Source: Macrostomum lignano (taxonomy: Eukaryota). From it: a stretch of DNA of 64,000 nt. The position numbers and the translations under genes were made by a program. Position 1 is the first letter of the stretch; every line of letters starts with the position of its first letter. Below are positions 1,792 through 3,040 of this stretch, in pieces. Under the pieces are notes generated by a model. It did not search any database. It was not told the DNA's origin and was given only the letters and a program-made list of their open reading frames with translations. The stretch lies in the NCBI GenBank assembly GCA_002269645.1, contig NIVC01000421.1:186001-250000 (forward strand), given 5' to 3'.

Positions 1792-2034
1792 CGCCGACAC
1801 AGCAGACCCCAGGTGCGGCGCATTTGCCCCCAGCGTCGCCAAGGCAACCGTTGGCGGGGAGTCGCCTGCGGCAGGCGGCGGCCCTCCAGCTGGCGACGCC
1901 GCTGCAGTCGAAGCTGCCACCGGCGTTTCTTGGCTCGCTGCTGGCGGTCACGATGCAGCCGAAGCTGCCGCAGCAGAGACGCTCACCGAGACACACTCCG
2001 CTGAGGCCGGGGTCGCCACAGGGCACGCAGGGGT
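1792..2034 (-). CDS. Vasopressin/oxytocin-type precursor, exon 2/3 (neurophysin core)
   Basis: TTCTCAG| acceptor and G|GTGAGT donor, both phase 1; (D)[26 protein letters not shown]...[13 protein letters not shown] has the neurophysin Cys pattern. Confidence 0.93.
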
Positions 2035-2042
2035 CTGAGAAA

Positions 2043-2220
2043 ATAGATAGATAGATAGATAGATAGATAGATAGATAGATAGATAAATAGATAGATAGAT
2101 AGATAGATAGATAGATAGATAGATAGATAGATAGATAGATAGATAAATAGATAGATAGTTAGATAAATAGATAGATAGATAGATAGATAGATAGATAGAT
2201 AGATAGATAGATAGAGAGAT
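2043..2220. repeat. (GATA)n microsatellite in neuropeptide intron 1
   Basis: Direct; serves as the pyrimidine-rich tract on the minus strand. Confidence 0.97.
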
Positions 2221-2654
2221 AAATGGATGCAGTTCACAGCGGTTCACTTCTATTTACGAACTCCTTGCAGCGGGCTCAGGACACGCAGCTGTCTCTTTCA
2301 TTTCATCAAAGCCAGCAATCCGATCAGCTGCTCAGAGTCAGATAATTAAAGTACCCTTTTAAGGCATTCGAGCTCTGTAATTGCTGAATCATCAGTTTGT
2401 CATAAAAAAGGCAAGTTTAAAACTTTCCCTTTCAATTAAGTAAGGAAATTAATGCAGCGCTACATATGATAAATATAGTTTCCTTATATGGTCAGGTGGA
2501 GTCGCCTATGCCTTAATAATATACCTTCTGCAAGCAGCTTGTTAGCTGTATCTGAAAACCTCCCGCCTACTTCCATTCATTGGCGCTTCTATCAATTAGC
2601 ATGTAAAAACATCCATAACCAAAACTGCGCACAATCTTCTGTCTCTCGAACCGT

Positions 2655-2855
2655 CCTGACCCTACCTGTGCGCTGATTCGCTGATTAGCTGCTTCTAACT
2701 TCATGCCATTTCGTCTCCCTGACCCTATCTGTGCGCTGATTGGCTGCTTCTAACTTCATGCCATTTTGTCTCCCTGACCCTGTCTGTGCGCTGATTGGCT
2801 GCTTCCAAATTTATGCCATTTCCTCTCCCTGACCCTATCTGTGCGCTGATTGTCT
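2655..2855. repeat. About 55-bp tandem repeat, roughly 4 copies
   Basis: CCCTGACCCTATCTGTGCGCTGATTGGCTGCTTCTAACTTCATGCCATTT.. recurs at about 2655, 2718, 2773 and 2828. Confidence 0.85.
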
Positions 2856-2925
2856 ACTGGTAATGTTTTTATGATATTGTCTAACAGAAGCCACAATATT
2901 AATAAATACTTATTATTGCTCTCAC

Positions 2926-3040
2926 CGAATCCGCTTCGCTTTCCGCCTGGCGGGCAGTTGTTGATGAAGCAGAGCTCGGCGAGGCTACACAGGCTTAGCA
3001 GCAGTAGAAACGGCAGTACCTGAGCACTCTGACTCGTCAT
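2926..3040 (-). CDS. Vasopressin/oxytocin-type precursor, coding exon 1/3 (signal peptide + CFINNCPPG + GKR)
   Basis: MTSQSAQVLPFLLLLSLCSLAEL-CFINNCPPG-GKR-SGF, donor G|GTGAGA. Join of 3040..2926, 2034..1792 and 1275..1226 = 408 nt = 135 aa, with 14 neurophysin Cys. An in-frame upstream ATG exists at 3118. Confidence 0.93.

Follow-up and report, generated by a model that had tools for sequence, protein, structure and literature searches.

The textbook view of the vasopressin/oxytocin (VP/OT) family is a mammalian one: cleavage of the signal peptide exposes the first cysteine of the hormone (Cys1), whose amino group then locks into the neurophysin of the same precursor via Glu47. In bovine crystal structures, Glu47 pairs with the Cys1 amino group and Arg8 contributes. 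Insertion of the free hormone N-terminus into the neurophysin pocket must occur in the endoplasmic reticulum of mammalian cells, and either deletion of Glu47 or an uncleaved signal peptide blocks folding and export (PMC5267430). Mutations that block exposure of Cys1 or formation of the lock lead to inherited diabetes insipidus, and the invertebrate literature consulted assumes the mammalian layout throughout. Here we describe a VP/OT-type precursor gene of the flatworm Macrostomum lignano, located in a stretch of 64,000 nucleotides (contig NIVC01000421.1 of assembly GCA_002269645.1, positions 186,001 to 250,000; hereafter, the window), in which a Glu-Leu dipeptide stands between the probable signal peptidase site and Cys1 and in which the carrier has lost the classical lock residues.

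The gene occupies 3040..1226 on the minus strand and, after splicing of its three exons, gives an open frame of 135 residues, consisting of a signal peptide, Glu-Leu, the nonapeptide CFINNCPPG, a Gly-Lys-Arg (GKR) signal and a 100-residue neurophysin with 14 cysteines. Its identity and intactness as a VP/OT-type precursor gene are next to certain. Overall, the best explanation of what follows, which we favour with moderate confidence, is that this is a functional Macrostomum precursor gene with a Glu-Leu spacer ahead of Cys1 and a carrier without the classical lock residues. Excerpts of Kobayashi et al. 2022 (Sci Adv, PMC8896804) give four M. lignano accessions as VP/vasotocin precursors, cited in those excerpts without discussion of the junction or the binding residues. 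The gene is already known, in other words, as a flatworm VP/OT precursor; going by the excerpted literature, its spacer and lost-lock anatomy appears to be undescribed, as does the independent recurrence of that anatomy in cladocerans. Literature searches returned no paper for the peptide CFINNCPPG, no M. lignano peptidomic data and, for neurophysin paired with Glu47, nothing in open-access papers.

The junction between signal peptide and hormone

The first exon reads MTSQSAQVLPFLLLLSLCSLAEL-CFINNCPPG-GKR-SGF. Its predicted signal peptide spans codons 1-21 (2978..3040, minus strand, as are all parts of the gene; MTSQSAQVLPFLLLLSLCSLA) and contains a hydrophobic core, VLPFLLLLSL, followed by CSLA; AlphaFold models residues 8-22 of the precursor as a helix. 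Between the likely cleavage site after Ala21, with Ser and Ala at positions -3 and -1, and Cys1 lie Glu22 and Leu23 (GAG CTC, 2972..2977). The nonapeptide (codons 24-32, 2945..2971) and the Gly-Lys-Arg amidation and dibasic cleavage signal (codons 33-35, 2936..2944) follow the family pattern of C-x4-C-P-x-G and then GKR. Cys1, Cys6, Pro7 and Gly9 of the hormone, together with the Gly and Lys of the signal, are invariant in a family alignment of 68 sequences, and the Arg is nearly so.

The residue preceding Cys1 was compared across 137 surveyed precursors, in each of which hormone and neurophysin could be recognised. It is small (Ala, Gly, Ser, Cys or Thr) in 130 of the 137 (A 97, G 19, S 9, C 3, T 2), the exceptions being Leu in five precursors, all from Macrostomum, and Pro in two from Daphnia. 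Candidate cleavage sites were scored with a log-odds matrix derived from published residue frequencies by position in 1877 eukaryotic signal peptides (Choo & Ranganathan 2008, Additional file 2), in which Leu accounts for 1.39% and Ala for 48.9% of residues at -1. When the matrix was checked against 121 non-redundant canonical precursors, the site assumed by homology ranked first in 63-71% and among the top two in 82-89%. An initial annotation, made from the letters of the window, had held that the (-3,-1) rule favours cleavage after SLA over cleavage after AEL, and the matrix agrees: in each of the three scoring windows compared, SLA|EL is ahead of AEL|C, with margins of 3.2-5.4 bits, and a comparable imbalance toward a site two residues upstream occurs in none of the 121 canonical precursors. 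The top site of the window precursor reaches 14.1 bits, against a canonical mean of 9.8. On these scores we judge it probable that signal peptidase cuts before Glu-Leu. The sequence features quoted in the initial annotation are all present, on the minus strand, and go beyond chance given the -1 and Glu47 columns across the survey.

The Glu-Leu dipeptide is common to both paralogue families of M. lignano. The second family (PAA50340.1, PAA63765.1 and PAA85176.1; loci L002-L004) carries the hormone CFVANCPPG and shares its exon structure with the window family, to which it is 47% identical, with synonymous divergence (dS) above 1. Its junction reads ...LLLAACHLC-EL-CFVANCPPG and, when anchored on Cys1, the signal peptides of the two families have just the leucine core and C-x-L-x-E-L in common. 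That Glu-Leu was kept between families this far apart suggests that both residues are part of a product, because a mere signal-peptide terminus could vary freely, and cleavage would be better with Ala, Ser or Gly at -1. Gene conversion as the source of the shared dipeptide was considered and rejected: recent conversion is unlikely because the adjoining hormone codons differ between the families at five synonymous positions.

Residues 19-27 of the second family (AACHLCELC) contain two extra cysteines three residues apart. The top matrix site of this family, LLA|ACHL, would keep both of them and so place four cysteines in the peptide part.

The junction could also be read as canonical. Signal peptidase would then cut after Leu23 (AEL|C) and release a normal nonapeptide, the carrier would bind it via some other acidic group or the backbone, and the divergence would reflect fast evolution along a long flatworm branch. 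We consider this rather unlikely, and the following points speak for it and weigh against a cut before Glu-Leu. Leu at -1 is rare yet real in eukaryotic signal peptides, and the residue at -3 to Cys1 is small in both families (the favourable Ala in one, Cys in the other). In the widest scoring window, AEL|C scores 8.7, inside the canonical range of 9.8 +/- 3.6, and the matrix is itself crude, as its rate of first ranks among canonical precursors attests. For the second family it is ambiguous: His, whose frequency at -3 is 0.16%, holds that position for a cut ahead of Glu-Leu, neither site scores well, and the best-scoring sites would leave unpaired or extra cysteines. Published descriptions, moreover, all put the hormone directly after the signal peptide. 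Set against these points are the confinement of Leu at -1 to a single lineage of the survey, the retention of Glu-Leu across distant paralogues although a better residue at -1 was available, and a preference for the upstream site larger than that of any canonical precursor.

The neurophysin carrier and the loss of Glu47

The initial annotation had described the neurophysin as lacking both Glu47 and Arg8, and this is borne out by alignment to bovine neurophysin II and by the family columns. The HMMER alignment sets Ala/Val opposite Glu47 and Trp opposite Tyr49, and the Cys7+3 rule puts Val85 (1897..1895) at the Glu47 position, within the Cys7-Cys8 segment (1871..1906) that is the counterpart of bovine CQEENYLPSPC. 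Glu occupies this column in 125 of the 137 surveyed precursors and in 98% of the other 65 members of the 68-sequence alignment. At the Arg8 column, two residues ahead of the first Cys, the survey has R in 83, H in 27 and K in 9 precursors, and the window precursor has Asp39. We regard the loss of these two residues as very nearly certain. Other residues stand in place of Asn48, Pro53 and the Pro within the motif G-P-x-I-C-C as well, while all 14 neurophysin cysteines (16 cysteines including those of the hormone) and the conserved glycines are retained.

The carrier departs from the family in length and charge as well. Its Cys6-Cys7 loop (1907..1954), modelled with low confidence, is 16 residues long, whereas 124 of the 137 precursors have 9 residues there (94 precursors) or 10 (30). 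An insertion here, of 6-7 residues, had been reported in the initial annotation as one of 6; the insertion is real, and paralogue alignment places a gap of 7. The N-terminal arm, at 5 residues, is the shortest of 111 (the minimum is 6 in the 110 others, and the classical type has ~9). From Cys7 to Cys9, the net charge is +4, the highest seen, and in the second family it is +3 to +4; the 110 other 14-cysteine neurophysins have a mean of -0.9 (standard deviation 1.8, maximum +3). The second family also lacks Glu at the Glu47 position.

These features bear on canonical processing too, which requires some other means of holding Cys1. In its favour, the second family has Asp or Glu one or two positions past the Glu47 column; against it, the whole stretch from Cys7 to Cys9 is free of acidic residues in the window family. 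Two acidic residues of the enlarged loop, Glu73 and Asp81, could nevertheless replace Glu47 in three dimensions, a point that counts against loss of the lock. Structure prediction supports the fold: in the Protein Data Bank (PDB), Foldseek matched the AlphaFold model of the window protein with neurophysins only (bovine), at probability 1.0 and a template modelling (TM) score of ~0.5 on the target. The predicted local distance difference test (pLDDT) for the neurophysin is 55-82, versus 90-97 in a canonical polyclad control modelled with the same 68-sequence alignment. For the hormone segment the pLDDT is low in both (55-59 in Macrostomum, 53-55 in the control), probably owing to the attached signal peptide, and the models say nothing on docking, so that they lend our preferred explanation no help at this point.

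The carrier changes can be placed, from the sequences compared, within the Macrostomum branch, because the platytocin precursor of a polyclad flatworm is canonical on every count. A second lineage with a comparable junction is found in the Cladocera. A search aimed at this group yielded six precursors, the most distant at 41% identity, each with [A/G]-Lys-Pro directly before Cys1; Pro at -1 is strongly disfavoured, and the matrix prefers a cut before Lys-Pro. At the Glu47 position these six have Thr, Ala or Asn. The suggestion in the initial annotation that orthologues be examined for correlated loss of Glu47 thus proved productive, in that the Cladocera, the sole other lineage with a putative spacer, also lack this residue. 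Intact 14-cysteine precursors without Glu47 are confined to both Macrostomum families, Daphnia, the lacewing Chrysoperla and the scorpion Centruroides. The last two, the only intact precursors to combine a canonical junction with loss of Glu47, tell against a strict coupling, since a spacer is evidently not required for the loss. Both spacer lineages lack Glu47, and zero lineages combine a spacer with Glu47 (lineage-level Fisher's exact p = 0.0008-0.003, a rough count that ignores kinship). As far as these sequences indicate, spacer and Glu47 loss are associated in two independent lineages, which speaks for junction and carrier having changed in concert. The initial annotation had gone on to propose that peptide and carrier co-diverged to the point where the hormone is no longer bound in the classical way. 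The comparison, together with the conservation of Glu-Leu in two families, supports this in part; binding itself may have been lost, or may have been rebuilt.

Gene structure, paralogues and neighbouring sequence

Exon 1 (2926..3040), spliced as in an annotated paralogue (locus L001), carries the start codon, signal peptide, Glu-Leu, hormone, GKR and the first 3 1/3 neurophysin codons. Read on the minus strand from 3040 down, it runs from ATG through MTSQSAQVLPFLLLLSLCSLAELCFINNCPPGGKRSGF to a GTGAGA donor past base 2926 (G|gtgaga, phase 1). Exon 2 (1792..2034; acceptor ttttctcag|AC, donor G|gtgagt) encodes the neurophysin core, Cys1-Cys12, and exon 3 (1226..1275) encodes EICTTASECDGGRQID and the stop codon, giving Cys13 and Cys14 and no copeptin-like tail. 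The span in the initial annotation had exons 1 and 2 right and missed the third exon, which lies outside it at 1275..1226. Introns 1 (2035..2925) and 2 (1276..1791) are both phase 1, at codons 39 and 119, and identical in position across five Macrostomum loci; we take these to be the intron positions of vertebrate VP/OT genes as well (before the first neurophysin Cys and two residues past the second Cys-Cys pair). One splice combination alone yields an open frame with 14 neurophysin cysteines. The product matches Pfam PF00184 (Hormone_5) at 33.5 bits, versus a cut-off of 27.2, and bovine neurophysin II from the PDB at E = 0.003 (HMMER).

Long, clean microsatellites dominate the two introns as well as the 3' flank. 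Intron 2 is almost wholly (GTCA)n (1292-1782, 123 copies), intron 1 contains (ATAG)n (2043-2221, 45 copies), and a 22-bp unit is repeated 18 times downstream of the gene (150-548). The microsatellites give rise to spurious plus-strand open reading frames (ORFs) of 250 residues that overlap exon 2; the long ORFs in question, which span exon 2 and the repeats (1286..2054), were rejected as translated repeats rather than genes. Intron 1 also holds a 55-bp tandem repeat (2679-2852; 3.2 copies, 92% identity), each copy of which has GCTGATTGGCTG, a CCAAT box on the strand of the gene. This might be a regulatory module or a mere repeat.

The closest protein is M. lignano PAA87831.1 (Mlig001406.g1; 97% identity), from which the window copy differs at four residues (S5N, T124A, E127D and G131D); the exact protein of the window copy was absent from the database searched. 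A word-indexed protein search with the window protein returned this paralogue as its sole match, and in an exhaustive search of representative proteins two Macrostomum clusters only scored below E = 1e-10. No orthologues from other Macrostomum species were found in the protein collections searched. The window gene reads as a duplicated sister copy of Mlig001406.g1 in M. lignano, or as its orthologue in a very close relative, because the L001 locus aligns with it through introns and flanks at 88-96% identity and shares its three exons and their splice sites.

The coding sequences of the window copy and L001 differ by seven synonymous and four non-synonymous changes (dS 0.076; non-synonymous divergence, dN, 0.013; dN/dS ~0.17), the amino-acid changes falling at residue 5 or beyond residue 123 and none in residues 6-123. 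The gene is under purifying selection. These values also bear on whether the gene is a decaying or functionless duplicate, in which an odd junction and lost residues would simply record relaxed constraint. Such decay would be in keeping with the several genomic copies, the lowest family-profile score among full-length members (102 bits versus 120-163), a model confidence below that of the control and, according to excerpts of Kobayashi et al. 2022 (PMC8896804), the lack of a clear VP/OT receptor orthologue in M. lignano. No receptor of this type was noticed among the window ORFs inspected, no search having been aimed at one. Yet the five copies examined all have open frames and intact GT-AG introns at identical positions, the 16 cysteines, hormone core and GKR are all retained, and two paralogue families have persisted past a dS above 1. 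With the low dN/dS and the constancy of residues 6-123 added, we rejected a pseudogene or relaxed selection, and deem decay very improbable.

A wrong gene model, in which another start codon or first exon removes the Glu-Leu junction problem, is hardly plausible at all. Both copies of the window family do have an in-frame ATG 26 codons upstream (3118). Its use would just lengthen the N-terminus and leave the surroundings of the cleavage site unchanged; the 26 upstream codons differ at four amino-acid positions between the copies, as fits untranslated sequence; the NCBI annotation of the paralogue has identical start and splice sites; and the second family has upstream stop codons and shares the junction. 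The upstream ATG was accordingly rejected as the start. The stretch that it opens (3041-3118, minus strand, and upstream of 6001 in L001) is probably 5' untranslated region, and could be an N-terminal extension or an upstream start.

Two observations concern the wider family and its database records. A 2020 review recorded the VP/OT system as lost in flatworms and in rotifers. Bdelloid rotifers (Rotaria and Adineta) have many intact VP/OT-neurophysin precursors (P0020, P0106, P0108, P0110, P0118-P0122, P0126 and P0134-P0138), with His rather than Arg at the Arg8 position and Glu47 kept. In M. lignano, an older model of 704 residues (P0033, UniRef A0A1I8H502) fuses a paralogue of the precursor with a translated repeat and a globin-domain gene; the fusion arose in annotation, as an artefact, and could lead database searches astray.

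Elsewhere in the window, an ORF at 58085-58885 (minus strand) contains a C-type lectin domain (PF00059, E = 9e-9) with a hydrophobic N-terminus ahead of it and probably represents one exon of a gene for a secreted lectin. A minus-strand ORF of 380 residues at 8833-9975 is built from a repeated unit of ~19 residues (SPLASTLSSRIYPLLSHLP...), its Pfam matches are without a significant stretch, and it may encode a tandem-repeat protein or be a translated minisatellite. A pyrimidine/purine-rich simple repeat of ~5.7 kb, at ~22800-28550, produces fake overlapping ORFs of 912-1152 residues, nearly all Leu, Ser and Phe, with no Pfam match.

Proposed mechanism and comparison with known systems

In the mechanism that we propose, signal peptidase would cut after Ala21 and the prohormone would start with Glu-Leu instead of Cys1. 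The amino group of Cys1 would then be tied up in a peptide bond, a mammalian-type Glu47 lock could not form, and the residues that build it would be freed from constraint or re-tooled. The neurophysin would be retained for another role, whether folding, aggregation or self-association, granule sorting, or a new binding of the extended N-terminus, because its cysteine scaffold is still conserved and under selection. Cleavage at Lys-Arg and amidation would yield ELCFINNCPPG-NH2, which an aminopeptidase or dipeptidyl peptidase may later trim to the nonapeptide. We lean towards the view that the classical N-terminal lock is not used, and consider it doubtful that the secreted peptide stays an 11-mer.

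A bolder version can be formulated from the charge of the carrier. Arg residues of the Cys7-Cys9 segment are conserved in both paralogue families and could serve to bind the acidic Glu of the extension, and a positive binding segment opposite a conserved Glu might, speculatively, hint at a new way of holding the extended N-terminus. In its complete form, Macrostomum would secrete Glu-Leu-CFINNCPPG-NH2 (possibly with pyroglutamate), the carrier pocket would have been rebuilt with reversed charge in a co-evolved new binding mode, and the cladocerans would have acquired their spacer independently. We regard this combination as improbable.

Were this bolder version true, the carrier would, for the first time in a VP/OT system, have a handle other than the free amino group of Cys1. 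Two independent spacer lineages that lack Glu47 and keep a 14-cysteine neurophysin suggest that the lock is dispensable and that neurophysins have a second, general role, which could be studied in a tractable, transgenic flatworm. In practical terms, attempts to de-orphanise a receptor in Macrostomum may call for synthesis of the 11-mer rather than of the predicted 9-mer.

Among known precursors, PAA87831.1 is identical to the window copy in its hormone and neurophysin core and shares its three exons. The family of PAA50340.1 and PAA85176.1 has the same Glu-Leu junction, Pro-Pro-Gly tail and 14 cysteines, but its extra residues lie between Cys7 and Cys8, not Cys6 and Cys7, and it retains Asp/Glu in the vicinity of the Glu47 column. 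The platytocin precursor of the polyclad Stylochoplana pusilla (P0129) resembles the window precursor in its Pro-Pro-Gly tail, dibasic site and 14-cysteine neurophysin, and differs in having Ser before Cys1, Glu at the Glu47 position (CAIENENPHPC) and normal loop lengths. According to excerpts of Kobayashi et al. 2022 (PMC8896804), a cloned receptor responds to the platytocin 9-mer; for Macrostomum, no receptor is known.

With the mammalian type, represented by bovine neurophysin II in complex with oxytocin or dipeptides (PDB 1NPO and 2BN2) and by human pro-vasopressin, the window protein shares its fold and disulfide scaffold. It differs in having Val for Glu47, Asp for Arg8 and a 7-residue insertion, in lacking Asn48, Pro53 and copeptin and, probably, in that Cys1 is not the N-terminus. 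The cladocerans (Daphnia pulex, D. magna and relatives) resemble Macrostomum in layout, with a conserved dipeptide between a small-residue site and Cys1, no Glu47 or Arg8 and all 14 cysteines intact; their spacer, however, is Lys-Pro, and it is between Cys8 and Cys9 that their carrier has its insertion. Because dipeptidyl peptidases classically act on X-Pro dipeptides, later trimming of the cladoceran peptide to a 9-mer is plausible. Glu-Leu, unlike Lys-Pro, has no obvious trimming route. A precedent for a carrier that outlives its classical use is provided by the NG peptides of deuterostome invertebrates (Elphick and co-workers), in which neurophysin is kept though the peptide cannot use the Cys1/Tyr2 binding mode. 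NG peptides are not of the VP/OT type, whereas the Macrostomum hormone is a typical VP/OT nonapeptide.

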